The notes below the pieces were generated by a model, which was not told the origin of the DNA, made no database searches, and saw only the letters and a list, made by a program, of their open reading frames with translations. Of a DNA stretch of 64,000 nt, positions 5,571-28,904 are shown piece after piece. The stretch is taken from NCBI GenBank assembly GCA_964036045.1, contig OZ038378.1, forward strand, positions 93,930,001 to 93,994,000, in the 5' to 3' direction. Position 1 is the stretch's first letter, and every line of letters begins with the position of its first letter. The position numbers were made by a program, and so were the translations under genes. The DNA is from Eutreptiella sp. 'Long Island Sound 2002' (taxonomy: Eukaryota > Protista > Euglenida).

Positions 5571-7634
5571 ATGGCGACTCTCAATCTTGAGAAGTCGCTA
5601 AAGCGAGGGAGTTGTGTTGTGTGCAACAAGAAGGGCTGCCACAAGGCATGTGTTACATGCCTTGTAGCCTACCACAACCACTGTGGACACGCTTGCCCCT
5701 CTGCAGCCCCCTCTTCACAACAGCCACCAGCACCTTCTCCAGACCCGCCGACCCCCCCTGCTCAACCTGAAGTCGGCCCTGTCCCACCTGCGGAGAATGA
5801 CCCACCTCTTGCCCCAGACTCTGCTTCCCATGCTGCCTGTGGTGGAAAATGTGGCCAGAAGGATGCCTCTTCTGGTCAATGCGGATGCACAGAGGAGATT
5901 TGTGGCTCTGGGTACCGTTTCAAGGGTCGGGTTTCAGGGGGTGAGAGGTTACAACATTTCACTTCGGTGAAGCACGAGGCATGGGTACATGCTCCTCCAC
6001 CCCAACCATCTATTTTTGGTAGCATTGAACGGTTTGTGGTAAAAGGGGTGGCACCCGACATTCCATCCGATGCTCAGCCGGAAGTTCCCGCCTCAGAGGA
6101 TGCGATCCTTCTGCCCCCTCCTCCTGATAGGCACCCCACTCCATGTGGTGGTTACATGCCGGAAGGTCACACACAACAGTCGGTGATACTCAACTTGCCT
6201 TTTTTTTTTTGGATGCACAACAATTGGCCGAAGGTACAATACCTTCGATCCCGCATGCTTGGCAGTTAGAACTTTGTGGTGTGCTCGACGAAGTTGAGAT
6301 TTTTCAACGTGAATTTCCCAGTGAGCCCTTTTTCATCTGCCATCGAGGCAACGACCGCCTAGAAGGCACGTTCTCTGTGTGTAGAATGGGTCGGGGTTCC
6401 GGCGCTTGCCCGGATATTGTTCAACTGCAGTACCGGTTGGCAATTGTAGTACAGAAGTCTGCCATTTATGCCAAACACCCGGAATGGAAGGTCATCCGAA
6501 AACGAGCTACCACGGGTGACAACATCACACCTGCAACAGCCGGTAGCTGCGCAGATGGCATTGATTGTGTAGCAGTGTGGAATGCCGGGTTGGATATGGC
6601 AAGTGCGGAACTACAAAGAGAGTTGCGTGCAATGGCTGTTGGAGGGGTCGGCATCTTCAGCCCATTCGGTGTTCCGATGGAAGTCGGCACAGTGGATGAT
6701 GCCGAGGAGATTCTCGATGACCCCGATGATCTCCCTCAGTGTGATGAGGAGGATCAGTTGGAGCAGACGTTCACTAATGACTCCATGATTTTCTTTGAGG
6801 GAAAACTGACTTCCAAACAGCAGGTTTTGAATGAACTCATTAACACACCCGCGGGCGCTGCTCCGCGGGACCGTCTCATGCGTGCTTTGCAGATGCCACG
6901 GCCAGGCAAGTTGCCCACATTGACCGTGACTCCCCAAGCGGAGAACATGCCTGTGGCGGTGACACATTTGCTGCTTGTGTGTGCTTCCACCAGGAGAAGC
7001 TCAAGTGGGGCATCTTTTCCCTTTGGGTTGTCAGTGATTCCTTAGGACACTCTGCCATGGACACACCCACATCTGAGATTGAGGGTGCGGCGCACTTGAC
7101 AGTCTATGGGCAGTTTATGCCCCTTGAGCGTTATGTCAGCGCAGGATTGCATCTTTGGCATGACCGTCTTCATGCACTCGCAACGTCGTTTCCCGGTACC
7201 TCTGTCTAGTTCATTCGTTTGCAGGTAAACGAGGATAGCAAATGGTATGCTCCAACTAGTCAGTTGGATGCCTTGTCAGAATTGTGTGCCCAATCCGCAC
7301 CTCAAAAGGTGCCTCCTCTTAAGTGTGAGCCTTATGAAGGCTTGTTTACTGCAGATCGTGGTGACAAAGGTTTCACCACTGACATTTCCCGCTCAGTGCA
7401 GTGCAAGATTTGCGAGGCAACAGTGCCACGCTTGTGCATGCTCACTCATGTGGATCAGCACCTTCTGCGGAAGGAGTGCGTCCAAGGTCAGGACGCCATT
7501 TCTTTGGCCACGGCTTGTGGGTTTTGTGACGACCGTGTCACTTGCTCCACGCAGGTCGTGATGCGGAACAAGCGGACACATGCCTTGGTCACCCTCATGG
7601 TCTCTGACTGTCCCAGTCGACCAGCTAAGACCCC
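5571..7634 (+). pseudogene. P-element/THAP9-related transposase-like gene with Cys/His zinc-binding modules (5' part, internally deleted)
   Basis: It has an N-terminal C-x2-C...C-x2-C...H-x2-C (PHD-like) module. GNDRLEGTFSVCR resembles the P-element QD-x-LE-x2-F-x3-R catalytic Glu region. It also has CKIC...HVDQHLL...CGFC. The reading continues in the inverted segment 10771->10244. Confidence 0.5.
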
Positions 7635-7878
7635 TGCGAGGGTTGTGATGATACGGGTGGGTCCAGGGCCACAAGCACACTGGCGTTTGATTTTGGGGAT
7701 ACAGATGACATGACAGTGGGGGCTTGGAGGAAATCAGGGTGCTCTGGGCAAGGATCAAATCGATAGAAAGTGGTGATTTGTTTCTGTCCGGACCAGTTAT
7801 TCTCAAATTTTAGCCTTCGCAAGGGGAAATCCAGGTTACCTAACCAAGAATTCTGCACAGAACAGCTGAAATCACATA

Positions 7879-9438
7879 TCATGGAAGTCTCAGCAAAATG
7901 TAACAGGCAAAATCATGAGAGTCGGGATCACACAGAAAAATGAATAGCACATCAGTGGTACAAGTGGCAGCACTGTAGCAATACCCCGTGGGAAACAGGC
8001 TCAAAACACACAAAACCCAAAAGGAAGCGAAATTTCGCGTCTCAAACCAAAATGTGCAAAAAACAATATTGAAAACAACAAATATCTCAAATGTGGCGAA
8101 ATTTCGCCACTCCAGCACTGCCAAGGCATTCTTCCCACTTCCCGGATCTCTACCAGCCCAATTGCAGTCTCTCACAAGGACACCAATGCTAAATGTAGGG
8201 GGGGGATACTCTTTCAACAACACCTTCAACCCCAAAAGTAGCTCCTTGCTTTTAGACTGCATGTCGTTCAATGGTCCATTCTGCGCCGCAACGGCAAATG
8301 CATCAAGTTTGGCCTGAACTCTTGGTAGAAAAGTGCCAGCATTAAGACACAGCGCCAGTATTGTCTTCTCCATATGGAGGAGCTTAACCTTTGTTGGTAC
8401 CGCACCCCCTTCCTTGAAATCGGTGTGTACTCTCTCAATCAGACAGATAATGGGCATAAAGTTGCGGTAAAGCATGGTGATCATATGCTTGTACGGGTGC
8501 CAAACCACGTAGATGAGGGGGAGGCTTGGCCAGTGCAACTGGAAGTCGCATGAAGTGTAACTCTGCCCATACAGGTATTTCAAGAGCTCATAGTGAATCT
8601 TCATATCCACACACAATGGTAAATCATGACGAGTTGCCTGCTGCACATGCCGGATTGTATGTATCAGTTTCAAGTGTTCCAGTTTGCTTCCACACCGTAG
8701 TTGAGACAGCATCATTGGTTGCCAACGGAGAGATACCACATTGTGCCGCACAATGTCGAGGGGGACTCTGACAAAGGTACGCTGAATCATGTCGGGAAGA
8801 GCATAAATCCGCCGAAACAGATCCGCATGACGAAGTTGTAAAGCATCAACACGTGCCCCAATTGTCCGAACGGCATCCAGTAGTGAGACATGACCCGGAA
8901 ATGGTGGTAGGGCTGGCAAATGTTACACGGTCACAGCTGTGCAATTTATGGAGTGGTCAGGATGCAGCAGGTCCACCCCATAATTCTTTTTCACCCAATT
9001 GTCATACCAGAGCCCCATCTGGTGGTTCTGCATGCTTTGCCAAAGCCAAGTTGCTTGTTCTCGTGCATTGGCAGTAAGTGAGGGCATAGCTGCATGCACA
9101 AGTCCTGTGGGAGCCAATAATCGGCGGGTCCTCCGGCTCAATGAAAGAGGCATTGGTACATCCTGGGACTGTGCATGAGGGGCTGCCATCTTTCTCAGAA
9201 GTCGCCGCAAGCATAGCAATTGATTGGAGAAAACAGTGTACCAACGGGGCTTCTTCCGTATTCCATGGGCAAACAGCAACCGTGTAAAGTCCTTCCGTGA
9301 ACGTCGATTTGTCCGCATTGCCAGGGCCCAGACGGCCAATAACCTTGCAGAGCCCCCGTCGGCAACATCCGTCATGAGGTCATCAACGTTCTGAAACTCA
9401 CGACTTGCCACAACCACCCTTAGGAGTGCCGGATCCAT
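7879..9438 (-). pseudogene. Element A DDE transposase (Academ/DUF6589-like), 3'-truncated
   Basis: Motifs WYDN, CVDMKIHY and IYVVWHPYKH are collinear with the ORFs at 18037-20166 and 26833-27537. There is one in-frame TAA at 8923-8925. Confidence 0.7.
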
Positions 9439-10243: not shown

Positions 10244-10771
10244 CTATGAGGACGAGGAGGAGGAGTCTCGGCGGGCGCCCTTCAAATGAAGCTGCCGTTG
10301 GGCTTCGCCCCGCCTCTTCTTGTTGCGCTTCCCGACGCTATTAAGCGGACGGGATCGCTCAGCCCCAGAGGTCGTTGCCTCTGACTCACTTGGGAGCGGG
10401 GGAGCAGGAGGCTTTGGCTGGGGCAAAGGCAGGGGAGGCAAGCTTGACGACGATGAAGCAACGTCGCCAGGTGCAGATGAGGCCGCTGCATCAAACTGAG
10501 CATCATCAGCCTGTGCGGGTGCATTGCCCTGATTTTTTTTCTTCCCCTTGTGAGGCACCCAATTCAGCACCGCCTCGTGCTCTGCCTCTGCAATGTCCAT
10601 CAAATCAGGGAGCCGTGCACTGTCATGCACATCTGCATAGTGCTGTGCCATGCAGTAAGACCAAACTTTCTTTGTGCATAGCGGACAGCGGACAGGATGA
10701 TTCGTGCACGGGCTGCTTGCAGATCTTTTTTGTCCTCTGAGGGCCCCGGTCAACGAAATCCGCACAGCCGG
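10244..10771 (-). pseudogene. C-terminal zinc-finger part of the P-like gene, displaced by the inversion
   Basis: PCTNHPVRCPLC..VWSYCMAQHYADVH joins in frame to the 7219-7634 segment when the inversion is reversed. Confidence 0.65.
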
Positions 10772-13358
10772 GGGAACAAGAAGGCCGCTGCGAAAACAGT
10801 CACTCTACCACATGCCGTCCAGAAGACAGTGGTGTTATCCCACAAGGTCCTGTGGGTGGATGTCAACCGCGAGCATGGGCCAATCCGGAAGGTCAGCGAG
10901 ACCAGACTAAAGCTGCCGTGGAGGATTTGGCAAGGGTACCTCCCGTGGGGATCATCAAGGGATTACTGGTCTGGCCTGACAATTGTATGTTACTGCATTG
11001 CTATTACACGTCTGTCGTTTGTGTACTGGCGTGGTGACCAATTTTTGTCTGTTATTGCCTCAGTGGGTAGCTTCTGGATCATTGGTGGTTAGCATGTTTT
11101 TTGTGCGGCGAGGAGACTGGCCAGTGAACGCGAGAAAAAGAATCTGGACCCTTTGAGATGGCCACTGGAGTTTGAGTGTATGGTTCTGAAGTGGGATACC
11201 CCCTTGCGCCAGAGGAGACGCCTAGCCGGCCACCAGCAAACAGCACAGCTATCAGGCACAGGAGCATGCATGAGTGAGAGGGCAGTGCTGCTGATTGAGA
11301 ACTTGGAGGAGCCTGAGAATGCTAATCTCAGTCTCACTGACGTGTGCCGCCAAATGTTGGAGGATGCTGGACTGACAGCTGATGAAGGAGGAAGCCCGGT
11401 GTGTGACTGTTGCTCTGATGCGCATTCCTGTCTTGAGCCTGAAAAAATTTGATGGTATGCCCTGTAGGATTCTCTGGCACGACGCTGGTTACCCTTGGCT
11501 AGAATGATGGACACAGCTGGCTACACAGCAATTGATGGAATACGCAATTTCGAGAACAGGAGCATCCCCTTGTCACTTGGATCATTCAAACCGTTGGAGG
11601 GGCTTATTGGACCATACCTTGCACAGTGTGCCAGATACATGGAGACTCCACGAGCTACTGTTGCACGCTTGGCTAAAGTGGCACGTGAATGTCAACGGGA
11701 AATGCGATGGGGCTAGATTGTTACGCATCCTGACTGTCTAGAGGAATTGGTTCACCCATCCCGCAGTATGTTGTGCAGGCATCCCGAATAGGACTATGAA
11801 ATCATCGAATTCAGCTGATAGTGGCGAAATTTCGCGTCTCAGGTGGAAACACGGTCTGGACACCCAGCTTTTCCCTACAACAGGAAATACATCCGACATT
11901 GCTACCCTACAGCGTCATATCAATGGGATTGGTGCATTGAAGTTCCGCTGTGCAGACTGGGTGTACACTCATGACATGCCTATGCCTCCCTGGGACTCTG
12001 TGTGCAAGGCCGAATTCTGGACATCCTCAAAATATGTAGACTTCAGGAGCCACCTCGCCAGACCTCGGAATTCCTTTGACCTTGCCAGCTCCGAAGGGAA
12101 TGTGGTTCACTTGCCAACAGTATTTGGTTCTGGTGCAGATGCTACTGGCGGTGAGTCCCCCTTTCAGCTTTGTCTTCTGAATCTTACTACCATTTTGAAT
12201 GCTACTGTCGTTGGGTTTCCGTTCATACTGGCTATCATTGAGGTTCCAAAGGGCTAGTCCATGGGTCTACCACCTCTTGTTGTGCGACATGTTTCAATGG
12301 GGAAACCACTGGTGGTTGCTGGTGAATTGGCGGATGTTCGAATCATCATAAGCCAGCTGCAGACTGACCTGGCTGAGGAGGGAGTGAATCAGGTGAGTGT
12401 CATGGTGTACAACACTGGCAGCCGCAGTCCCAATTTCACTATGATGCAATCAGTGATGACAATTGTCACGTTGACTCCAATTCCAAGGAAGGTACATTTC
12501 CCCCTGTGAATTGGTACCCCAAATCAGCCAAATTCGAAAAATGAAGCGAAATTTCGCCACTCCCGCCATTTTGCCCAATTTGCACCATCTGTTTAGCTGC
12601 CGATGTACGTTACGTTCAGTGAAGGCCCATTACCTAGTACCCTGTGTGCTGTGGCTGTTCAATGGGTGCTGCAGGTTCTGAAAGTCCCGATGAATCTTAC
12701 AAAACTGGGTGCTGGTGGGGTCTTCCTCTCCAAATTAGGCCGTTCAGCTTCGGTTGTATTTGGTTTCCTCAGAGTTGCGGATGATGAACTACCTAAAGAA
12801 ACTATTCAGCTCACAACTGGTACTTTAAGAGAGGCTGACTCTGTGGCGCCAATCTACGAGGAGTTTGTGTTGCCACAACTGGACAAGGGTGTGCCTATCG
12901 ACAGGACTGGAATGGCTTATGTACCTCATGACCTTGATGAGTAGGACCGCATGGATAGTAGGACGGACTTGGATGACAAGCCCAAGGGAAACCCAAAGCC
13001 GAAGGCATCTAAGCCAAGGCCCAAGAAGGGGGGAGCCAGCAATCCTTCCTATGTCGATGCAGGTGGCAGTGCCGAGCCCCAAGCAACGCCTACAAAAAGG
13101 GCTCGATCACCCTCTGTTGAGGCTCCAACGGCGCAAGATGATGAGCAGCAGACAGAGCAGACACAGCAGCAGAGTCAGCAATTGGTCACGCCGAACAAAG
13201 GCAATACACATCCACTGTTTGAGCCGAAAGGACAGTCACCGTCACCAGAGGGATTGGAGAACTTTGCGAATTTGGTGAGTGGTGGGACTGCACCAGGAGC
13301 CCAGCCACAACAGCAAGCTCAAAAAGGAACGTGTTTGGGGTACAAGCGACGATGGTGA
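10772..13358 (+). pseudogene. Element A cargo: ParB-like domain plus degenerate amino-MTase-like domain, spliced
   Basis: Segments EHGPIRKV, VEDLARVPP..LLVWPD, FWIIGG*HVFCAA, LKWDTPLRQRRRLAGHQQTAQ, LAIIEVPKG, FSEGP and LSKLGR align with the gene at 21189-24876. Putative introns end near 11843 and lie at about 12492-12597. Confidence 0.7.
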
Positions 13359-14649: not shown

Positions 14650-15605
14650 AAACTCTGCCAACATGCGACACATACTGTATGCTGTTGTATCAGGTCTGGG
14701 CCCCCTAGCCACAAGGTCAGACTTGTTCTAATGCCGACAGCAGAAGTTCGCCTGACACTGTGGATTTGTGCGAGACACCCATGTCCTTCACCCCGCCTCT
14801 GGTGCCATTAACTTAGACATGTGGCGTAGTCTCCTTAACATGGAGACCCCCTATCAATCCGCCAAGGATCTATGTGGGGATGCTGTCGATGGCGGTCTTG
14901 GTGGATTTTTGCGTGCAGCTGCGCATCAACCCCAAGCCCCGCCGGCAGAACACTGTGAACAACTTCAAGGAGGAGTGGGGCGACCGAGGGCGGAAGCGGT
15001 GGCTACGGAGGTTGATGCCAACCATCTTCATGCTATAGTGTACGCTGCTTAAGCTTAGTCATCTGGATACTACCCGTGCAAGCCTGCCTCAACACACGTC
15101 AAGGGCTATCAAACGGGGTCGTGTTCAGCTTGCCGCTTGCAATTTGCTGTCAGGCCGTCAAGCGCCTATGGCGACATGGGTAGATATTAGGGAACAGGAG
15201 GTTCTACGGATGTTGCAACACAGGGGGGGGGGGGGGGGGGTGGCACTTGTTGCCAGGCTAGAGTAGTTCAGCAAAGCCCGGAACCCCAAAAACCCGGCCA
15301 GTGGGCGCGACACATCATGGTCAACAGTGGCAATGGCATTTCTACCTGCTGGTAGTTTTAGGGGACATTTTGTGGGGCACCCCACGCCTAACTTCCTATA
15401 TAGTGATGTTGCTCAGCATGTTATGCACCTACAAGATGCATGGGTGTCCTTTACGGCCTGGACAAAGCACCTTGTGCGTCAACACATGGGTTTCGAGGGG
15501 GTACGGTGCCCATTGGACCTTTGTCGCAAGGACGTTGAGGTTAGTCCGTGGTGCCGCTTAGCTATTAGGGATTTGCCTATCTCCGCAACCTTTGGGTTTC
15601 ACTAG
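14650..15605 (+). pseudogene. Element C transposase, 5' part (interrupted by element B)
   Basis: VALVARLE*FSK..STVAMAFLP..FVGHP parallels VVWVDN..TAIAVLHT..FLGHP of element B. It joins in frame across the ACTAG TSD to the ORF at 26833. Confidence 0.6.
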
Positions 15606-16608
15606 CTCATGAGGCCCATAGTGCCCCCTATCGTTTTAGCGAAAAAAGGGGTGATGGGTGGTGTTTTGCGTATGGTAAAATGGGGGTTCAAATTTACATT
15701 TTTTCATCAGGCTGGGCTCTGCAGAGCCCAGACCAGCCGTGTAAGCCATTTCTGGCCCCAATATTACACATCATAGACCTCTGGGCTCTTCAAAGCCCAG
15801 GTTACAAGTTATACCCTCTGTACCTACCCACGGTACAACACTTGGCACCTGTATACGGTGGTCAAGTGGCCACGCTACATGGCGCTGAGTTAAGTGGTAG
15901 ACTCTCGTTGACATTGTAACACATTCAATCTAAGCATTGTCCCCGGACAGGTCAGCAATAACAGTATTCAAGGATACAACTCCTACATATATTACCAGTG
16001 AGCAATGATCCAAGACGCTTACCACACCAGGCGTCACATATTCTAGATGGAAATGCCTAAACAAGGCTTATATTAGGATTTTTCAACAACCTGCCCTCTG
16101 CAGAGCCCAGAGTTCATAAATTTGCTGCTTGAGGGGTGCTTATTAGGGTCTCCCTGTTTGCTGGGCTCTGCAGAGCCCAGATCTTCACAACTTCCCATTT
16201 TGCCCCCTTTTGTGTGACATAATAGCGCTATGACACTCCGAAACTTATTCAACATGTGGTCTGGTAGTATTTTTTTCTATGCCTTTCTGCCGCGTTGCTG
16301 TTGTATCGTGTATTACAATTGTGCACCCATGGCATTGTGTAAGTATGACGTTCGCCATTCAGGAATACGCTGCAACAAGCCTTGGACTGTTTGCACGCAG
16401 TGTAGTCCAACATGGTCCAATCGGGTAGTGTTTCTATTGTTGTGGTCTGTCCGATACTATGGGATTTTTAGGACACATTGTTTGCAATATACCCTAATCT
16501 ATTGCAGTTGGTTTTATTCATACTGTGCAGTGCTCATACATTTACTATCTGGTCATACGTCCCGTATATTAAGTACATGTAACATGCTATCTTCCTTTTA
16601 CAACAGCC

Positions 16609-17352
16609 ATGGCTGATTTCCCACATGCTAGACGTACGGAGGTGGATCTACCGGGTTCTGGCCAGGATACTGAACGAGATGAGGCTGTAGGACCTGTACC
16701 CTTACCGGTCTCATCAACCAGTGGAACAGCAGCGCGTGCTGCAGGTACGCTCGCCTTGCAAGAGGCGATTATGTTTACGGGGTCAGCACCCCCATCCCCA
16801 CCGCGGCCACCAAAGCTTGTCCCCAAGGACCAGCCAACCCCACCAAAGGCCTCCCTCAATGACCCATTGACTCCAAAGACAATGGAGTTGCTGAGGGACA
16901 ACAGTGGTGACCAGGCACGATGGTTCGTGCAGTACATTTGGGGGCTTCGTGCACGGTTCCGTTTTGCATTGCGGAACCCAATGCGCAACCCCCTCGTCAC
17001 ATGGCAACAAGGGGATCGGATATGCCAATCCCATTTTCCGTCACGCCGCGACCAGCGGGCTGCATTGATCCTGGATACACTGAATCCAGAATCACGTCCC
17101 CCTGTTGAGTTGTCTCCCCATCCCCGTATCCCACCTCCTCGGCCACTTCCTCCCCCGGATGCCGACCAACCCACACTTACACAGATTGATCGGCACCCCT
17201 CCGATCGCCAGCACGTAAGGTCCCTTCCATTACCTGTGGAAGCAGACCGCACCGGTGGGCAGTCAAAATACAGCCTGTTGCCACCAGTGACTGTACCACA
17301 TCGCGGCAACCCCCCCCGCCCAGAGTCACAGTTCAGTAACCTCAAGTGGTAG
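16609..17352 (+). CDS. Element B accessory ORF or upstream exon (247 aa, Pro-rich, RICQSHF motif)
   Basis: Uninterrupted ATG ORF. RICQSHF recalls the THAP C-x2-HF motif, and a similar WICARHP occurs at about 14760 in element C. Confidence 0.45.
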   Translation: MADFPHARRTEVDLPGSGQDTERDEAVGPVPLPVSSTSGTAARAAGTLALQEAIMFTGSAPPSPPRPPKLVPKDQPTPPKASLNDPLTPKTMELLRDNSGDQARWFVQYIWGLRARFRFALRNPMRNPLVTWQQGDRICQSHFPSRRDQRAALILDTLNPESRPPVELSPHPRIPPPRPLPPPDADQPTLTQIDRHPSDRQHVRSLPLPVEADRTGGQSKYSLLPPVTVPHRGNPPRPESQFSNLKW

Positions 17353-18036
17353 GCGGTCAGTTAGCGCCCCGCTGCCCCTGTCTAATAATGCACTACCCCC
17401 AAGGAGTTCCCTCCTGCATCCCCCCCCGCGCACTTCTCTGTTGCCCACTGCCGCTTATGCGGACAACCGACATACCCCCAGGTACTCACTTTTGCCACAT
17501 GCGCATGTAGGATTGTCGCCGGATGTGGCTCCATCTGTCCCCCCACAACCATCTACTATCCCGGTAAAGAAGGATGGTCGGTATCGGTCACGGTGGTCAT
17601 TACTACGTGATATGCCCCCGGCCAAATACCGGAAAACTCTGTGATGCATTAAGTGGTTGGTCTACTCCCCAAATGGGTGGTATGCACCCCCAACTATCAT
17701 TTTTTGGGACCCTGGGCTGTGCAGAGCCCAGCTTGCGCCAAATGCTACTTTTACCCTTCTCAATTCTTTGCTTGTGGCACGTCCCTCCCTCTTTTTCCTC
17801 TGTCTATTACACGGCCCGCCATTACTGATTACGGGACGCTGGGCTCTGCAGAGCCCAGCACTCATAAACTTGGTACTTGAGGGGTGCTTATTGGGGTTTC
17901 TCTGTTGGCTGGGCTCTGCAGAGCCCAGACCTTCACCACTTCCTGTTTTGCCCCCTCTTGTGTGCTAGTCTACGCCTCTAGTTACCTGTTCTGGTCACCA
18001 CCTTTTCCTGTTGTCCACCCAGATTGTCTTATCACT

Positions 18037-20166
18037 ATGGCACCGGTTTCTATGTCGTTGCATGTCAGCTACATGCGGTCTCTTTGTAAGACAGAATGGC
18101 GCACTGGTCGCCAAAAGATTTTGTCGGCTGTGCGCCATGGTGTGGCAAAGGAATCCATAAGATTCTGTGCGGGTCTACGTGTCAACAAGCGGACCCGCAT
18201 AACTATCGACCGCATTTGCAAGGTGTTGGCACGAAAACAATGGCCGCGTTGGCTAACTAATTTTTCCAAGGAGGCCTATTATGTATGGCTGGGGATGCGT
18301 CGCATGGCCTTGCCACAAGCGGCCGTCCCCAGTGGTGAGAGCACCATTGCTGTAATGCGGGCAGACAGCCGCAAGCTGGTGCACGCTGGTATCACCAAGC
18401 CATCCCGGTTGTCTATTGCAGACCAGGGGGCATTACAGTTCCGGAAACTGTGGCGTAGCATTGTTCGCCGTGATATTGTGGTGTGGGTGGACAACTAGTG
18501 GCATGCCCAGCTTCGGGCCAATCCGGTGAAACCCAATGTCTATCTAGATGTGACTGCCATAGCGGTGTTGCACACAACCCCCCTTCCTTATTTTCTTGGC
18601 CACCCGAGTGACCTAGTGGACCGGGTGGACACAGTGGCCGTGGCAGTTGTTCAACAGCACAGAGGAATGTTGAAGATGTGCACTGATATGTGCAATACAC
18701 CCATTTCTCGGAGAACCATCCGTGCCCCCCTCGATGTTGCCCGGGAGGCTGGTAGACAGCAACTCTTTTGGAAACCATTCGGCATATATGAGTCCCGTAC
18801 AGGTGAGAACCAAGACCTCTTGGATCTCCTTGATATGCTACGCACTACCCAACGGCATTGTCAAAAACCTATGGCATTGCTCGTTGATTGCAACGTCCAC
18901 TACCGGGTGCTCAAATTTTTGTACTCTAGAGCAACCATTGACTGGAATTTTCCGGATTGGTTGCGGGGTATCTCGTTGATTTACGGCGTCTGGCACCCCT
19001 ACAAACATGTTTGCAATATCATTTGGCGTAAATTCTTTCCTCTGTTTTCGTACATCACCGCTCCCGTGTTTGGGGCCGGTGCGCGCATATATAACCATCC
19101 CAAACTCATTGTAATAGAGAAAACCATCGCTGCCCTCCTTCTCTCAGCCCCGGACATACGGGCACAACTTTGGCAGAAAATTACCCTATTTGAGGGACGC
19201 GCCAACCAAGCAGCCCTAAACACACAGGATGGGTTGCGCATCCTTCGGGGCCTTGAATCCCTCCTGAATTATTACCTCCCAGGCATCTTTGTAGTAGGAC
19301 ACTTAGTGCACAATTGCACTTGGGCTGGGCGCGCCGACGGGACTGGTATAGTGGCCACGTGTGTACTTGAGCACTGCGTGGGTCTGCTTGTTGACCTAGC
19401 CGGTCCAGCTGCAGCAAAAATGGACTATGTCCGTACCATATGTTGTGCAGTTCTGTACAATACACAATGGCACGACGACACGCCTGGTGCTGCCCATGTG
19501 GAGGGATGTTGTGAGGCCCTGCTTGCAAAATTGCGGGCACGGTGCAAGCAACACCCCGACAAGCACACGGCGGATGAGGCTGTTGACCTATTCCGCACCA
19601 TGCCCCCCCGTCAGGAGGCACGTGCAACGGAGTCCCTCTCCGAAAGAGTGTGTGTTGAGGTGCGCGACAGGGTATGGGCACTCATGCGTGGTGCAGGACG
19701 GGGGGAGCATCCAACTGTGCGATGGTCCTCGGGTCCAGTTAGTGTGGTTGAGGCAGAAAGAGACACAACGTACGTGTTCCCCGAAAAGGGAACCGGGGGT
19801 ACCCTAACAGTTGTGTTCATGAAATCTATTCTAAAGCGCTTTCTGCTCACCCTAGTAGGTGGACAAGGGCTCCGCGATGATGCCATGGCTTACATACGTC
19901 AACATATCCCACTTAGGCCACATGTGAACCGCCGCGAGGCCCGGGCAGCTGTAGAAACAGTTGGGTTCATACCAATTGCAATGGAGCACATTATCCCCCT
20001 AGTGCCAAATGCAATGTCAATTGATCATGTGCGTGCCCCCCCTCAGGATGGCGTACCTGTGATCCGGGCGAGGGATGCTGTAGATGTTGATGCCCTGTCT
20101 GATGGCCCTGTACCTGTTGTGCTCAGTGAGGAGTTGCGTGAATTTGATTTGATAGATTCGGACTAA
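18037..20166 (+). pseudogene. Element B DDE transposase (Academ/DUF6589-like), one in-frame TAG
   Basis: ORFs 17884-18498 and 18526-20166 are in the same frame. Motifs are WVDN, LLVDCNVHY, LIYGVWHPYKH and HVEGCCE. Confidence 0.75.
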
Positions 20167-20610
20167 TCACGGGGGGGTGGCAATGCAGACCCCCCCCCCC
20201 CCCAAGACAGGCCAATCTGTTGTGTACAGGCCCCTTATTGCTGTACCCAAGAGTCTGGGCTCTGCAGAGCCCAGCTTCCTCCGCCACTGAGTTTTTAGGG
20301 GTTGTTATACTGGTTTTTGACACTCTAGGCTCTGCAGAGCCCAGCCGGTCCCCACTGTCTGATATGTACCCGTATCTCGTCATTTTCAGTCGCTTTCATG
20401 TTGCTTTCATAGGCTCAGACTGATCATCGAGGGGGGTGGCAATGCAACCCCCCCCCCCCCATACAGGCAAATTTGATTTTTACACCCCTGCTATCACTGT
20501 ACCCCTAGTCCTTGGGCTCTGCAGAGGCCAGCTTTGCCTGACACTGAGTTTTAAGGGGTAGTATTACTGGTTGTTGTTACTCTGGGCTCTGCAGAGCCCA
20601 GCCTGTCACC
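20166..20610. repeat. Direct repeat, ~258-bp unit x2, each with a palindrome pair
   Basis: GGGGGGTGGCAATGCA-polyC-...GGGCTCTGCAGAGCCC...GGCTCTGCAGAGCCC occurs twice. Confidence 0.85.
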
Positions 20611-21188
20611 ACTGCCTTATATTTACTTCCATCTGGTCATTTGCTGTTCCTTTCTCAGGGCTGGGCCAGTCCTGGACCATGCCATCTTCGTGCTTTGATC
20701 TGTGCACACATCTCCATTCTTTCGTATTGTAGTGTGCACCCGCTGCGTCAGCCTGTGTGACCCTCGAAGAGGTGTGCCTGGCACTGCTGTACTCACTGTT
20801 ACGATTATTGGAGTTAAATTGCCACAAGCAGGTTTGGCTGTGGTGTTGCAGGCCATTTGCACAGGCCCAATTTCCAGCTGGTTCATACCTGTGTCAACGA
20901 GGGACGTTTTAGTAGGCCTGTTTGACGTTGTGACCATCAATGTGCCCTGGACATTGTACTTGAGATGCCTCTGCAGTGATTTGCTGTTTTGAAGACAATT
21001 TTGGCTATTTCAACCCATGTGGGTCCCAATTCGAATGCTTTGATCCGACTAATTTGCTGTCCAAATCTGCCATTTGCCACCATTGATGCTTTGAACTGTG
21101 TGATTGTTGTGCGGCTTTTGGTGACTTGATTTGTTCTATAAAGTCCGTGTGTTTTTGGACCATGTGTGACATACCAAACGAAGTTGCC

Positions 21189-24100
21189 ATGGATGGCAAC
21201 ACCGCTGAGATACCAGCGATGGACACACTGTAAGCCGAGAAAGTGGACGCACTGCAATCAGAGCCCTCCATAGAGGATGATGTACAGGGCAGCACTGTTG
21301 CTGGGGCCAACCAGGCCAGTCAATCTCCCTCGCAAGTGGTGAACAAGGGTCGTGTCGCAAGGAAGATGGGCAGTATCAAGGACTCCTCAACCGTACTGGC
21401 CATTCAAAACTACGTGGAGGTGCGGAGAGCGAAGGTGCCGCGCAAGGAACTGAAGATTGACAGGTGCATGGAGTATGGCCAATCCAGGATCATTGATTGG
21501 GACCACGTGGCGGAGGTGAAGGAGGACCTACTGGCAAACCCCCCCGATGGCCGACTGCAGCTTCTGGTTTGGGACGACAAAGGTATGGGATTGTTGCGAC
21601 GCAACTCGATCAACGTAATTGGCTACATGGCCTGCCCTGTGTGACCTGCCATGCTGTTGTATTCAGTGGGAGCCCTGTGGGTGATTGGAGGCCAACACGG
21701 CGTTGCGGCGTGTGATGAAATTTGCAAGGATGTGACAGCAAGGATGGGCGAGGTCGAGGATTGGATGACTAACTTTGACGTGCGCATCATCAAGTTTGAT
21801 ACATCCGTCGAGATCAGGCGAAAGTTGGCCGGACAACACAATAGGGCGCAGCACAGTGGGCGTGAGAGCAGTGTACCCCAACTGTTGAACAATTTCCTAC
21901 AACTGGCGGCTGAGGACACACAATGCAAGAAGACATTTGTCACCTTGATGTGTGAGGCAATCGTGGAGGCGGGGCTGACTGCGAAATCCGGCAACACGGA
22001 GACAATTGTCAAGCAAATGAGGCCAGCTGCCCATATGGCCCTGACCCGTGGTGCCACTTTCACGGACGCACTCGGCAAGATGCTGGAACGCAAGCAGGTG
22101 ATTGCCCTTTACACAATGCGATGCTTTGCTGGAATGCAACCCGACAATTTGTGGCGCGTATGCAACTACATGGCCTCGCCGAAGAGTACAGTACCGGGCT
22201 TCCAGAAGCTGGCAAAGGAGCTCCGCGCTGGGGAATTGTGGTGGTATCACTTTGGTCATCCCGACATGCCAGTTGAGCGCATCCACCCGTCACGACGTAT
22301 GCTGTTGCTTTGTAAGCCCCTGCCTTTTGTTGTGATCGGGCCGCTGCGACAGGGAGCCTGGATGAAGTGTAATGACCGATTTCAGTGTGACAGTTTGGGT
22401 CTGCTGGGCTCTGCAGAGCCCAGGATCCGCTGGGTTGCCAGTTAGTTGACTGCATGCAAGCTTGCAAAGAGACGCTGGATGTGTTGGATTGTCCGAACTT
22501 CCGCAACTCTACTCATGATCACGGGTGCACTCTTGCCTAATGATGTCCAAGCCCCCCCCCCCCCCCGGGAGAACCCCTAATTCACCATTTTGGTCATGCT
22601 AGGCTCTGCAGAGCCCAGATGGAGGGAGTTGACCAATTTCACACGCCATATTACCATCTGGAGAGTTCTGGGCTCTGCAGAGCCCAGGATCCCCTGGGAT
22701 GCCAATTTACTGCATGTACAGAGACGCTTGATCTGTTGGATTGTCCGAACTCCCGCAACTTCAGTCTTGATGACCGGTGCACTGTTGCCTAATGATACCC
22801 AAGCCCCCCCCCCCCCCGACACCCCCCAATTCACCATTTTGGTCATGCTGGGCTGTGCAGAGCCCAGATGGAGGGAGCTGACCAATTTCAGACGCCATAT
22901 TACCATCTGGAGAGTTCTGGGCTCTGCAGAGCCCAGGATCCCCTGGGATGCCAGTGGACTGCATGTACAGAGACGCTGGATCTGTTTGATTGTCCGAACT
23001 TCCGCAACTTCACTCCCGATTACCGTTGCACTGTTGCCTAATGATGTCCAAGCCCCCCCCCCCCCCCGGGACACCCCCTAATTCACCATTTTCGTCATGC
23101 TAGGCTCTCCAGATCCCAGATGGAGGGAGTTGACCAAATTTCAGACGCCATATTACCATTTAGAGAGTTCTGGGCTCCGCAGAGCCCAGGATCCCCTGGG
23201 ATGCCAATTGACTGCATGTACAGAGACGCTGGACTTGTTGAAGCTTCCTTGACGCTGGACCTGTTGACCGCTGCGCCCTGGCCTATTGATGTCCCACGAA
23301 CCCCCCCCCCCCCCCGGGCCAGCCCTTAAATTGCTAATTTAGTCATGCTGGGCTCTGCAGAGCCCAGATGAACCACAGTGACCAATTTCAGCCTTCATGG
23401 TACCAATTTGACAGTGCTGGGCTCTGCAGAGCCCAGGATCCAACAAAATGCAAATTTACGCTTTGCCGGATCTCTGTGACTTCGTGGATCGCCCTCCTGC
23501 CCTCCTCTATGGCTCCTGTACACACAGGCACAAAGACTGAAGTGGCTCGCATCTCAAAGAAGTTTAGTCACCGTCTGGCGAATTTTGGTGCATGGCAAGG
23601 GAGCTGGGAGTACAGCGAGAGCACGCCCTGGCCACCGCTCCAGGCACTGTTGAAGGCAGGTCTGTGGGTCAGCGATCGAGGAGAAGTCGAAGCCCATCGC
23701 AGACTGCTTGTGAGACCAGTGTTGAACCCAGCTGTTGAGGTGTCTGGTGGCGAGGTGGCAAAGGTCAATGTTGGCAAGGGGTCACAATCTGGAGAAATTT
23801 GGGCGTACGATGGATCGGTGACCGCAGTCCCAAATGAGATCAAAATGCCGAAGTACAATCTCGTCATTGTTGAAGTCCCGCGGCCCGGAGGGTGGATCCC
23901 TGGTGCGCAGATCGTGTGTGTGCTGTCTCAAGGGGTACTTGGCACCTTTCATGGACACCATGGGGATTTGGTCGCTGTGGAACAACACTTGCGGTCGCAA
24001 TTGGAAGATTTGTACCCAACGGCTTTGCGCATGGCTGTGTTCCACCTGGGGCGCCGAGAGGAGCCATATTTGTTTGAGCAGTCAACCTTGTTGCTGGTGA

Positions 24101-24876
24101 AGACCCATGGGATGGGCCCTGGAGTGCCGCACTTCCTCACACAAAAGTCGTTCACTGAAGGTCCGTGGCTGGGTCTGGCTATTTTGTGGTGGTTGGTGAA
24201 TTGGCTGGAGGACCCCAACGAAGACTCGGACGACACGCACATGGATGGTGATGCATCGCGCTGCCTGTGGGCACTGTACTATGGCCGCCGCCCCGACGTG
24301 ATCAGTCTGGGCTGTATTCACTTGCCTATCCCGTTAAATTGCGCATGGGGTGTACTATCCGATGGTCCCTACAATGCAGCTGATGTGGTCAACCTGCTGA
24401 AGACGAGCGTCCGGAAAGGGGACACGGAGGAGGATGTTGAGTGGCGGAGTGTCACGCAGTGGGCAAGCACCGGGCAGCCGCTGTTCCGGTAGGAGTCCCC
24501 TGACCAGGCAGCAGGCGCGGACATGAGTGAGTCAGAAGTCGAGGAGGTGCCGGATCCGCAAACTCCCAAGCCGAAGGGGAGAAACACCGAAAAGCAGCGG
24601 CAGAAAGAGCATGGGAAGGCGGAGCGCGAGTCGCGGAAGCAAGAGGAGGCACGGGAGAAGCAACGTAAGAAGGAGGAGAAGGAGAAGGAGAAAAAGGCAA
24701 GAGAGGACGAACGAGCAAATCGTAAGAGGAAAGAAGAGGAGGATACGTTGGCAACGGCAGCCGTTGGGGTGTCCCCATCGCAGAAAAAAAGGGCAGTTGA
24801 GGGCCTGCAGGCCACCGTGCAACAAGGTGTCCGGGTTGGCTTGTCCAAGAGCAACGGCAAGAGCAACGGCAAGTGA
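21189..24876 (+). pseudogene. Element B cargo: ParB-like domain, helical region, degenerate amino-MTase-like domain and K/E-rich tail, spliced
   Basis: ParB-like motifs are GQSRIIDWDHV, VIGGQHGVAA and LAGQHN. A GT-AG intron at 21583-21666 restores the frame (DDK-V-GALW). MTase-like motifs are YNLVIVEVP, TEGP..LWWLVNWL and LYYGR. In-frame stops lie near 21231 and at 24490-24492. Confidence 0.75.
22404..23436. repeat. Tandem array, ~249-bp unit x4, probably intronic in the element B cargo gene, two palindromes per unit
   Basis: Unit starts at 22599, 22848, 23100 and 23348 are spaced 249, 252 and 248 bp apart. Confidence 0.92.
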
Positions 24877-26829
24877 CTGGAGGCCCCACATAACGCTGGA
24901 TCATGACTGTCGCTGGACCATACCGGACATACAACCACAGACACGTCCGTGTTACTGTGCTGGTTTTGTGAGCGCCTGATGTGACTGGGCCTGTCCTGTG
25001 CAGTCCCAAGTGGTTGTGGGACAGTGAAGGATGTGCCTGTTTGACGCTGTACGTGTTTGTGGCTGATTTTGACGCTCATTTTTTTAATTTGCACTGAGCT
25101 GGGCTCCACAGAGCTCAGCTTGCCAGATTTGCTTGATTTGCCCCCGAGTATGAACAATTTTATACTGCTGGGCTCTGCAGAGCCCAGCATGTTGTTTCAG
25201 GCCAATTTGCATGCCTCCTGCTGGTACGCAGTGCTGCTCCCATCTCAACAGTGTCCCTGTGTCCCTGTGTGAATTTGGTTGTATCAGCACAACATTGTGC
25301 TCTGGCATTTCTTTTGGTACGTCCCTCGTTGACACAGTGTGCCAATTGTCGAGTTTTCTCACAATTGTGGTCCATATACGGTGCCAGGTTTGTGTGTATG
25401 AGCCCCAGATGATTCAATTCTTGCTATTTTTTTACCAGTCCATGCCTTTGCAAAGTCCAGATGCCTTTTGTAACCCCGATTTGGTCCTGACATGTTCTGT
25501 TACCCGTGCCTGGGCCCTGCAGAGCTCAGCTGAACGTGTCTGTCATTTCGAATTTACCAGGTATGCCCTGAGTCCAATTTCAAGTCAGTAGTTTGGGCAC
25601 ATGTTTGCTTTTTATCGCTGAGCCCTGTTTTATTCCTCGCTGTCATGTATGCTCAATTGCATTGATCTGTTGGGCCTGTGTCTTTTCATTTCTCCAGCGG
25701 TTGACGGTGCGTATGCTGGACAGTGGCCTGACACTGTCTACTGTGCGATGCTTAATTTTTTGATGCCTTTTGTGGCAGGTTTTTGTTGGTGTCGGCCATT
25801 AAACGATAGTTCAACATTTGCTCGGAACTTAGAAGGGGGAACAGTCTTTGTGTGGCCAGGTGTTAGTAGGTGCTTGTGAATCACATTTGGGGACACATCA
25901 GTCCGAGTCAATACAGCATCCAACTTTGTTGTTCCGGCGGACCTCCTAGAGCGCACATAACGGTTTTTACAACTTCTGTGCCTTGTTTTGTGTGTGTTCG
26001 TGCCTTAGACTCGTCAACTAGTGTGTACAGCTTCCATGCCTTGTGTATGACTGGTGCTCTAGTGGTCTATCGCTTATTGGGCTGAGATTTTTTTCGGTGG
26101 GGGGGGGGGCGGGGGGGGGGTATAGTCCGATGCCTATTGTAGCCATTACTACACTGGTGGTCTGGCTTGTTTATCGATAGCGTAATTCATGGGTGCTTTG
26201 TGATGTTTGTATTGAGCTGGGCTCTGCAGAGCCCAGCCAGTAGGAATTCCCTATTTAACGCCCTGTTACTACCTGTTTGCCTGTACACTGTTGTGTCGGT
26301 GTACCACCCTGTACTATTACCCCTGTTTTTAGTGAATTTCATGTATCTGGGCTCTGTAGAGCCCAGCCTTTCAGAAATGCTGCCTTGCACCCTCCTTTTG
26401 TACAGGTGCTGTTCTCTGCCGTGATAGGTGGCACCTTCTTCACAGGCGGTGCATGTACGGTCATGATTGCCGTTACAATACCACGGGTGCTAGAAGAACC
26501 GCAGCACATGCCTTTGCCACCTACGTGCTCCATTTGTGATATCAGAGTGTGAAACATAGTTTTATGGTGCGACTGGTCCATTTTCGGTATTTCAGACCTC
26601 CAAAACTGGAAAAAACAGTCGCTGCGCTTGTATGCTGTGAGGGCCCAAAATGGTGCCTTTTGGCTGCTTCGCACCCCTAAATTGCGTGTCGTTCCTCCTC
26701 CCCATAAACCCAGGCTGGGAACAACACCTCCGTTACGCTTGGCTATGCAGCACAGAGGCTAGGCTCTGTGCAGGACATGAATTTTTTTTGAAAAAACGAT
26801 AGGGGGCACATTGGGCCTCCTAAGACTAG

Positions 26830-28904
26830 GGCATGTATGGTGTATTTCAGTTGGCTACCAATTGTTCGGCACCAGTCTTACTGATGGTATGCGACATCAC
26901 CATGTACTACAGCTACTTGAAAGTGTTGTCTAGTTACTGGATGCAGCCACTTCCATTGCGCGATGTGTATGGCTCCGTTTTCCCCTTGTTCGGTATCTGG
27001 CATCCATATACGTTATGTGTTGATTACACGTACAATGCTTCCCTTCCATTCATGTTGGCACTTGAATTCGAAGGGTTCCCTCAAAACTCAGCGGCAAGAC
27101 AGCTGTATGCATATTCTTCCCTTATTGTTAAGGAGCGTCTTCTTTTGGCTATTCACCTGTCCATACCAAGTACACGTGCTCATTTACGTTCTACTGCTGG
27201 CAGCAAAACACTTGAACATAAGTTGTTAGCAAGGCTATACCATCTTGTCTTCCAATATGCCCTAGCCGTACTTTGTTTTGTTATTATGGTGTGCGATTGT
27301 TCGTGGTACCACCGTACACTAGGTACCATTGAAGTAGCTAGGCGGTGCTTGCAGGTTTCTCTTTACTTGCTTCGGAAATTGACCCCACAGCACAGAGATG
27401 GTGGTTACAAGCGAGCTTTGCACTTAGCACTACGAAAGTGGTCCCCATACCGCTCTTTCTTTCCCGCCTTTGCCTTCGTGCAGGAGAATGAGGCCCAAGC
27501 CACGCCAATCCGCCCCGATTCCTTTGATTTACAGTGAGACCTCTTTGATGCATGATACTTGAATGTTGAATATATTTCTTGCAACCCTTTAGTGGCATGC
27601 ACGGTTTGGGGTGTCCCACAGTAAGGGGGTGCATAGTAAGGTGTCCTAATGTGAACCTGCCTTACTATGGAGCACTTTTTGTGGGAGATGGTGTATCACT
27701 CCCTATACCCCCTCAATTCGGGTGTGACGAATGCGGTTTGACCCACGTGACATCGTATCAAAACCACAAAGGGGGCAAAAGTCGGGGAAAAACCATTATG
27801 ATCAAGCTGGTATATGACCCCCTTACTGTGGGACACCCCATAGGACTAGTCGGCCACACACAATGGGGTGGGGAGGTAGTCCTCACCTGCCATAGCCATA
27901 AGACAGTCCTGAGTTGCATTGGCCTACAAGAGGCTCGAAAGGCCGTCACACGGAGAAGTAGGTGCGAAATGTGAAACGACGCGAAACGACCACCTCACCC
28001 CCTGAGATGGTGATGCGAAACGCGAAAGGGTCGAAATAGCCTCACAGGCTTGGGCACCCTGTGGGGCACCCTCTTTGGTGCGGGCCATGCCAAAGAGGTT
28101 TCTGTACTATCAATGGGCCCCCTTGGAACGGCGAGGCCCTGTGGTCCCGTTTGGCAGGGGCATTGGGCGAGGACACCAGCATTACCAGCGTTGGTGACTG
28201 CCCATTGTTTTGGTTACCTTACGCCACCACCAGCCCGGTACTCGGAAGTTCGTACGAGTCGGTACGAGTTGTGAGCATGCATCTTACACCGTTGCTAGCA
28301 TGCATTCACGCCGGTACTGTGACAGTTGTAAAAAAGATGGCCGCTGGGCCGCGGCCGGGTGCCCAGGCTCCCGATACCCTGCAGGGTACTATGGAGTGGC
28401 TGAAGGACCCTGTTTTTCCACCTTGTTTCAAGACCCAACTGGCGGATGCAACCTTCCTATATGCTGCATACCGTTCGTTGGAGGTGTTTTTCTTTTAGTG
28501 AGATAATCCCGCCAAATTCAGCTTAGATTTGATGGATCTCACGAGGTGGCCGAGTTGCTGTGCACCCTGCGTTCCGCGAGTTCAAGCAGCGGTTCATTAA
28601 CTTCTGTGCCCATTTTGGGTATACACGCCCACACCCCTTCCCCGCTGACGGGGATGCTTTGGGGGATTACCCCCTCCTCCCCCCCCCGGACGCACCGGCA
28701 AGGGGAGCACTCCCTATCCCTCCCCAAGGTGTACCCGGGCCTATTGCGGCAGAGCCTGCACCACGGAACCCTGTGGGTCCTATTTTGGATGGTGATGATG
28801 CCACCAGCACTGATGCTTCATCATGTGATGCATCGAGCTTGACGTGTGCCATTGTGGAGAGTGAAATCTCGAACCTTGTTCGTAGTGTGACTGTTATTGA
28901 CTAG
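26830..28904 (+). pseudogene. Element C transposase, 3' part
   Basis: LLMVCDITMYYSYLK and FPLFGIWHPY are homologous to the A and B transposases. The more distal part is decayed and interrupted by a MITE. Confidence 0.65.
27607..27840. mobile_element. MITE-like element, ~22-bp TIRs
   Basis: TGGGGTGTCCCACAGTAAGGGG is inverted as CCCCTTACTGTGGGACACCCCA; no clear TSD. Confidence 0.7.

Follow-up and report, generated by a model that had tools for sequence, protein, structure and literature searches.

This report concerns an accessory gene of a DNA transposon in the euglenid Eutreptiella sp. 'Long Island Sound 2002'. The gene occupies positions 21189–24876 of the + strand in a 64,000-nt (64-kb) stretch of contig OZ038378.1; the whole stretch is called the window here, and coordinates are positions within it. 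The gene lies in a copy of a transposon with terminal inverted repeats (TIRs), designated element B, which contains many copies of a 16-bp palindrome of its own. We put at roughly one in two the probability that the gene product has a ParB/Srx-type front that recognizes these palindromes, joined to a C-terminal domain without demonstrable methylase identity. A preliminary description of the same DNA had read the gene as a fusion of a ParB fold with a degenerate beta-class amino-methyltransferase, carried by a eukaryotic transposon. Coordinates of the features discussed are collected in Table 1.

The transposon is confirmed as a genuine eukaryotic TIR element, and in this respect the preliminary description was correct. 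Element B is bounded by TIRs of ~40 bp and by 5-bp target-site duplications, which were found in three copies: ACTAG in the window, ATCGA on both sides of copy L001, and TTTCC/TTGCC at copy L006. L001 and L006, which lie on other, megabase-scale contigs of the same ENA assembly (ERZ25074135), match window positions 15611–26825 at 95–96% identity, and their homology to the window ends at the element boundaries. These two further copies are full-length; others are partial, and more than 100 copies are present in this one eukaryotic assembly. In word searches, either half of the accessory protein returned about 60 clusters, two of which comprise 99 and 118 members; only one match came from outside this assembly. 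The transposase-like gene upstream of the accessory gene gave no match in Pfam and NCBIfam searches; it has paralogs of 34–39% identity in the window (7879–9438, − strand) and in locus L005 (4512–5703) of the same genome. At least three diverged families of elements pair the accessory gene with a transposase-like gene. In addition to family B, these include an older family, A, represented in the window by a decayed copy, and family C, represented by L005 (P0214/P0216).

The palindromes are arranged in a family-specific manner. The window contains 20 copies of the perfect palindrome GGGCTCTGCAGAGCCC (at most one mismatch allowed; 0 expected), and 20 of the 20 lie inside element B, between 15714 and 26364. 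They are often paired, 69–70 bp apart; two tandem arrays hold many of them, and others are located upstream of the transposase-like gene and near both ends of the element (15714, 16163, 26219, and 26349). In L001, the 12-nt core of the palindrome occurs 22 times. Array length varies between copies: L001 (8165–9438) has ~1.3 kb more within the intron array than the window copy. Each 249-bp unit of the intron array also carries a run of 12–15 C beside the palindrome pair (22540–23320), and the same is seen in the 257-bp array (20161–20626). Each sister family has a palindrome of its own: family A has GCGAAATTTCGC at five sites (8027, 8096, 11824, 12546, and 13692), with one pair 69 bp apart, and family C (L005) has CCGAAATTTCGG nine times, with pairs 70–71 bp apart. 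The palindromes of A and C are related, sharing the core CGAAATTTCG, and the accessory proteins of A and C resemble each other slightly more than they resemble that of B. Such a layout would be expected if the element encodes a protein that binds DNA at specific sites, whether this is the accessory protein or the transposase.

Four open reading frames (ORFs) on the + strand of the gene region together carry every motif string quoted in the preliminary description, each at the place given there. They were assembled into a gene model of three coding exons followed by a Lys/Glu-rich tail, using the sequence, conserved splice sites, and phases of the window copy and five others. The ATG at 21366 is intact in all six copies compared, and the splice signals are intact in most of them, with single changes in L008 and L009; for intron 2, the acceptor is kept in all five other copies and the GT donor is altered in L008. 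Intron 1 has the same position in the relatives L002 and L003. The window copy has a premature TAG at the end of exon 3 and is therefore without the tail; the ORF runs on across this site in P0001 and P0003. Intact copies encode a protein of ~730 residues, and the tails of L002 and L003 resemble the family B tail. In L003, a distant relative, the counterparts of the end of exon 2 and of exon 3 share one ORF (P0208); because a single ORF joins them there, both halves belong to one protein, and the exon 2 and exon 3 parts, judged from sequence, encode a single polypeptide.

The protein has been maintained by selection. The ratio of nonsynonymous to synonymous substitution rates (dN/dS) among six family B copies, a comparison that the preliminary description had recommended, is 0.46 for exon 1, 0.34 for exon 2, 0.33 for exon 3, and 0.31 for the tail, with intron divergence among B copies of about 10%. 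Since copies decay neutrally once inserted, values of 0.31–0.46 suggest that the active lineage is under purifying selection. Purifying selection acts over the whole protein, both halves included, and the same blocks are kept in diverged relatives, which outside family B have 20–35% identity and were found in the window, elsewhere in the genome, and in three environmental samples; the earlier argument for selection over random decay thus holds.

At the N-terminus, inspection by eye of ~110 residues gives the order strand, helix ending in N-P-P-x-G, strand, (I/L)GGQHG box with helix, strand, and helix with AG(Q/E)HN(R/K)xQH, and this motif order fits the ParB/Srx core. The GGQHG and AG(Q/E)HN(R/K)xQH blocks are kept in three lineages (B, L002, and L003). 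We take the (I/L)GGQHG box to be nearest to the DGQHR form of the DndB branch. In hhalign comparisons, a segment of exon 2 aligns just after the G-S-R-R-R box of phage ParBs, in the expected register, at a non-significant score. The ParB reading of the N-terminal part is plausible but unproven: the motif order and the conserved boxes stand, and the searches gave neither a significant match nor a confident fold model.

On the reading preferred here, the N-terminal module would be a divergent ParB/Srx-type domain with a DGQHR-like box in the form GGQHG, missing the usual arginine, and together with the helical middle region it would recognize the palindromes of its own element, as ParB does parS. 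The protein would thereby coat or mark its own transposon, which could serve to assemble or hold the substrate for transposition or to protect the element against silencing by the host. A second activity, non-catalytic or other, would come from the C-terminal alpha/beta domain, and the acidic and Lys-rich tail may give chromatin or nuclear targeting.

Several results weigh against this proposal. The box has Gly where ParB, Srx, and DndB use Arg. Pfam, NCBIfam, and PDB sequence and profile searches, made with the exons one by one and with relatives, gave no ParB match, and hhalign against seven P1-type phage ParBs (a home-made, shallow profile of proteins that are not the closest conceivable comparators) gave a probability below 0.5%. 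The AlphaFold2 (AF2) model of the N-terminal domain, obtained from a natural ORF that reads through intron 1 (P0095:128-385), has a predicted local distance difference test (pLDDT) score of only 36.5. The C-terminal model finds its best, though weak, Foldseek matches in methyltransferase folds, so that methylase ancestry is conceivable. Finally, the palindromes could equally be sites of the transposase, since co-variation with the palindromes is as good for the transposase-like proteins of families A, B, and C as for the accessory proteins.

This last point leads to the alternative that survives best, although we consider it somewhat unlikely: the palindromes would be subterminal or internal transposase sites, and the accessory protein would have a role (anti-silencing, chromatin factor, or regulator) unrelated to them. 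Subterminal or internal transposase-binding sites are common in TIR elements, and the palindromes near both ends of element B, like the co-variation of the transposase-like proteins, are in keeping with such a function. However, most of the copies are far from the ends, in arrays that lie within an intron of the accessory gene or immediately before that gene; the same arrangement has been reported beside the ParB-like PAG3 genes of red algae (see below), and ParB sites classically take the form of perfect 16-bp palindromes.

The C-terminal part poses the methylase question. Membership in PF01555, the beta-class amino-methyltransferase family to which the preliminary description had assigned it, is not supported by the sequence comparisons, and there is a weak hint at the level of fold. 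Exon 3, P0003, and L002 gave no PF01555 match at E-values up to 1–10, and none in NCBIfam; hhalign against a home-made, shallow profile of 11 real PF01555 members (E. coli YhdJ and ten phage enzymes) gave a probability of 0.6% and a score of 19.5 over 29 columns, compared with 13–14 for cross-controls. When 1.84 billion representative proteins were searched with a hidden Markov model (HMM) built from exon 3, 70 hits came back, all of them family members or repeats; no methylase and no named family was among the 70. DPPY and FxGxG are absent from the exon 3 part and its relatives. The replacement of DPPY by EVP(R/K) in copies A and B had been correctly observed, and the shared E-V-P is real: at the place of motif IV, all relatives, distant ones included, have [D/E/H]-[V/I]-P-[R/K/V], whereas the 11 real PF01555 members keep P and Y invariant. 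Two other parts of the earlier motif assignment fell away. 'EGP', taken for a conserved motif, is EGL in most family B copies and missing in L002; the supposedly eroded FxGxG is a variable acidic linker that is wholly different in L002, missing in L003, and without conserved glycines.

An AF2 model of exon 3 from 14 diverse rows has a mean pLDDT of 50.8. Its core (residues 88–191) is a beta-alpha-beta-alpha-hairpin, with about residues 90–170 at pLDDT 70–88, and the last 125 residues are below pLDDT 50. Foldseek found 0 matches for this model in the PDB at E ≤ 0.001, and a search against viral structures was uninformative. The best PDB matches are non-significant (E 0.05–0.3, probability up to 0.84, about 100–150 columns, template modeling (TM) score about 0.2) and are mostly folds of class I S-adenosylmethionine (SAM) methyltransferases (spermidine synthase, METTL3–METTL14, M.HhaI, GidB, and TrmI), with Alba-like proteins also among them. 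The model thus leaves room for, but does not prove, a Rossmann core of the methylase type. The domain is without any sequence hallmark of a SAM-dependent amino-methyltransferase, so that, if it descended from such an enzyme, it would no longer bind SAM in the usual way. With the separate exons, neither a ParB match nor a Rossmann-methylase match of significance was found, an outcome that the preliminary description had named, for the spliced protein, as contrary to its fusion. Readings of the domain as Toprim (G-E-x-x-D after a strand) and as PD-(D/E)xK (from the E-V-P-K/R motif) were also considered and were dropped, as the second motif of each is lacking in the alignment.

We therefore regard as rather unlikely the explanation in which a ParB domain is fused to a dead or repurposed beta-class (N6_N4) methylase, descended from active ParB+methylase proteins of algal transposons and comparable to METTL14 with METTL3. 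The order of the model core does match beta4-alphaD-beta5-alphaE-beta6/7 of class I methylases, with [D/E]-V-P at the place of motif IV; methyltransferase folds, METTL3–METTL14 and M.HhaI included, predominate among the best Foldseek matches; the single hhalign segment lies in the expected alphaD-beta5 register and slightly exceeds its controls; and ParB+methylase fusions do occur in algal transposons (PMC12477816). Yet none of these signals is significant, the mean pLDDT is 51 with the region due to hold motif X and motif I below 50, the PF01555 motifs are absent or variable and the presumed SAM loop is missing in L003, and the search of the 1.84 billion proteins turned up no intermediate with intact motifs. 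The fusion described in the Ectocarpus mobilome is a ParB + N6_N4 methylase accessory protein of Sola1-1_Ec32, and similar proteins are cited for green and red algae (PMC12477816), the green-algal ones from Iyer et al. (2011) as cited in that paper. The present protein resembles them in having a ParB-like front and a second domain in a DNA transposon of an alga or protist, and in the idea that it marks its own element; unlike them, it has no recognizable PF01555 domain by the comparisons given above (Pfam, DPPY, FxGxG, and hhalign). METTL14 is a dead MT-A70 methylase that has EPPL instead of DPPW. It may illustrate by analogy how a methylase fold can be retained as a scaffold, and METTL3–METTL14 chains are among the weak Foldseek matches, but METTL14 is clearly MT-A70 by sequence and the C-terminal domain here is not recognizable as such.

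The resemblance to ParB could also be a chance product of short motifs in a protein made of folds not yet described. Every sequence, profile, and profile–profile test was negative and the key arginine is missing, as this explanation would have it; even so, it is clearly unlikely, given that over about 110 residues the protein follows the ParB/Srx core in its order of strand, helix, 'PPxG', strand, GGQHG helix, strand, and N-containing helix, that the exon 2 segment falls in the expected register behind the ParB GSRRR box, and that palindromic sites are present.

Compared with bacterial ParB–parS systems and the ParBs of phages and plasmids (PF02195; DGQHR/DndB), the accessory protein shares the core motif order, a G-G-Q-H box at the place of GERR/DGQHR, and clustered 16-bp palindromes as candidate sites; it differs in giving no significant match, in having glycine for the box arginine, in having no ParA partner, and in being encoded by a eukaryotic, intron-bearing gene in a transposon. 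A much stronger form of the proposal, in which the transposon runs a ParB–parS-like system of its own, is decidedly improbable as a whole: the accessory protein would load at the family-specific 16-bp palindromes and spread, a methylase-derived, SAM-blind domain would act as a reader of DNA or chromatin, the element would be protected from silencing or its excised DNA held, and each family would have a private pair of site and protein.

The nearest described counterpart in layout is PAG3, found in Plavaka (EnSpm/CACTA), MuDR, and other elements of red algae (Petroll et al., 2025, bioRxiv 10.1101/2025.02.11.637652). Its N-terminus is weakly ParB-like (HHpred E 0.29) and it has a tentative oxygenase domain (E 0.016); tandem inverted-repeat arrays adjoin the gene, and the authors propose that the protein binds its own element (bioRxiv 10.1101/2025.02.11.637652). 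The likeness comprises an accessory gene beside a transposase in a large DNA transposon, a weakly ParB-like front, a second domain that is hard to assign, and inverted-repeat arrays. The element differs from the hosts of PAG3 in its 5-bp duplication (2 bp in Plavaka/EnSpm), its other termini, and having no PAG1 or PAG2, and the gene differs in that the array is inside its intron and an oxygenase is not supported; the comparison with PAG3 is by description only, and no named red-algal protein was among the matches of the word and HMM searches. In layout, the gene fits an emerging class of ParB-like accessory genes of algal transposons, in a different element type. Orthology to PAG3, with a ParB-like N-terminus and a 2-oxoglutarate (2OG)/Fe(II) oxygenase C-terminus oxidizing bases in its own element, is very improbable, for beyond the shared layout and an FHGH..D string in family B and L002 that is like an HxD box, the His residues vary and relatives show G-E-x-x-D there, the model core is alpha/beta and not a double-stranded beta-helix, no oxygenase is among the top Foldseek matches, the duplication is 5 bp and not the 2 bp of Plavaka, and the published oxygenase call is itself weak. 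A 2OG/Fe(II) oxygenase domain was accordingly rejected, there being no conserved His/Asp triad.

Among the relatives beyond family B, copy A in the window, with the strings LAIIEVPKG, EGP, and LGAGGVFLSKLGR in ORFs at 11796–12257 and 12603–12944, is a pseudogene whose frame is interrupted by stops, including one within the GGQH box. Within and around element A, ORFs at 7219–7713 (+) and 10244–10765 (−) have zinc-finger-like motifs (Cys-x2-Cys ... His-x3/4-His) and a Ser/Pro-rich tail, and may be further accessory genes or exons of A. The only word-search relative from outside the assembly, L002 (Logan SRR20314591), is from a metagenome of the brackish sea-surface microlayer (bioRxiv 10.1101/2023.02.24.528798), and this origin hints that the family occurs in aquatic protists or algae. 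L003, L004, P0210, and P0212 are further relatives. P0142 (455 residues), a member of the exon 3 and tail cluster of P0003, is encoded on a 1586-nt contig of a JGI/IMG sample; the same or a very close organism is therefore present in an environmental data set. A metagenome scan with the exon 2 profile and a word search with the C-terminal part of L002 found nothing, and in 50,697 phage records tblastn with exons 2 and 3 gave no match at E ≤ 10.

A third diverged transposase-like ORF (26833–27537, +), with a WHPY block, begins 9 bp past the right end of element B; with this ORF directly beyond it, B appears to be inserted into another element of a related superfamily. Beside another B copy, L007 has a DDE_1 (pogo-like) transposase gene, a reverse-transcriptase gene, and then a 2OG-FeII_Oxy_2 (AlkB-like) ORF (371–2209, 15873–18632, and 19586–20008), and the genome, as seen from these surroundings, is dense in diverse mobile elements. 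In the window, positions 40000–64000 depart from the first 40 kb: GC skew there is strongly positive (up to 0.41), and two AT-rich blocks lie at 44–46 kb (GC 0.39) and 54–56 kb (GC 0.36). Three copies of another 12-nt palindrome, GGGTGTACACCC, lie within 1.4 kb (49081, 50275, and 50439) and may belong to a further element with a site of its own. Ten long ORFs of the window outside the accessory gene gave no Pfam match, nor did any of the six long ORFs tested within 40000–64000, and the window contains no tRNA and no Rfam match.

Table 1. Features of element B, its accessory gene, and the paralogous copy A, in window coordinates.
Feature	Positions	Strand	Remarks
Family B TIR DNA transposon copy, ~11.2 kb	15606–26824	+	Collinear with L001 and L006
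Target-site duplication ACTAG	left 15601–15605, right 26825–26829	.	Read from sequence
Left terminal inverted repeat	15606–15647	+	42 nt, 83% complementary to 26783–26824; termini identical in other copies
Right terminal inverted repeat	26783–26824	−	Pairs with left end; ~40-bp repeats
Transposase-like gene, upstream of accessory gene	17884–20166 (ORFs 17884–18498 and 18526–20166)	+	Diverged paralogs adjoin other ParB-like genes
Second tandem array, 257 bp x 1.8	20161–20626	.	Four palindromes; between transposase-like and accessory genes
ORF	21243–21644	+	Carries GQSRIIDWDHV
ORF	21651–22445	+	Carries IGGQHGVAA and AGQHN
ORF	23368–24492	+	Carries YNLVIVEVP, EGP, WWLVNWL, and LYYGR
Lys/Glu-rich ORF	24523–24876	+	
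Exon 1, first half of ParB-looking domain	21366–21582	+	ATG and GT donor kept in six copies
Intron 1	21583–21666	+	84 nt, in frame, GT..AG, contains TGA; read through in P0095
Exon 2	21667–22296	+	GGQHG box, AGQHNRAQH block, helical middle region
Intron 2	22297–23527	+	Houses palindrome array; exon 2/exon 3 phases match
Tandem array, 249 bp x 3.9	22468–23441	.	In intron 2; two 16-bp palindromes ~69 bp apart and a poly-C run per unit
Exon 3	23528–24489	+	C-terminal domain with alpha/beta model ('methylase' of the preliminary description)
Premature TAG, window copy only	24490–24492	+	CAG in L001, L006, and L007
Tail	24493–24876	+	Acidic, then Lys/Glu-rich; TGA stop at 24874–24876
Copy A, decayed paralog of accessory gene	10894–12941	+	Older, different element family; tblastn 22–25% identity to B

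The methylase question carries a caution, that a dead methylase is not to be called from motif order alone; the family goes unrecognized by Pfam, by NCBIfam, and, across 1.84 billion proteins, by HMMER, and a structure is still needed for its assignment. To our knowledge, very few transposon accessory proteins that recognize their own element are understood, the VANDAL anti-silencing factors being the main example. The locus described here is a compact and testable case, with a conserved protein and, in each element, about 20 copies of a simple 16-bp palindrome, and the different palindromes of sister families amount to a natural specificity-swap experiment. The family-specific palindrome arrays are the most useful finding, as they make a ParB–parS-like model of self-recognition by a transposon directly testable.

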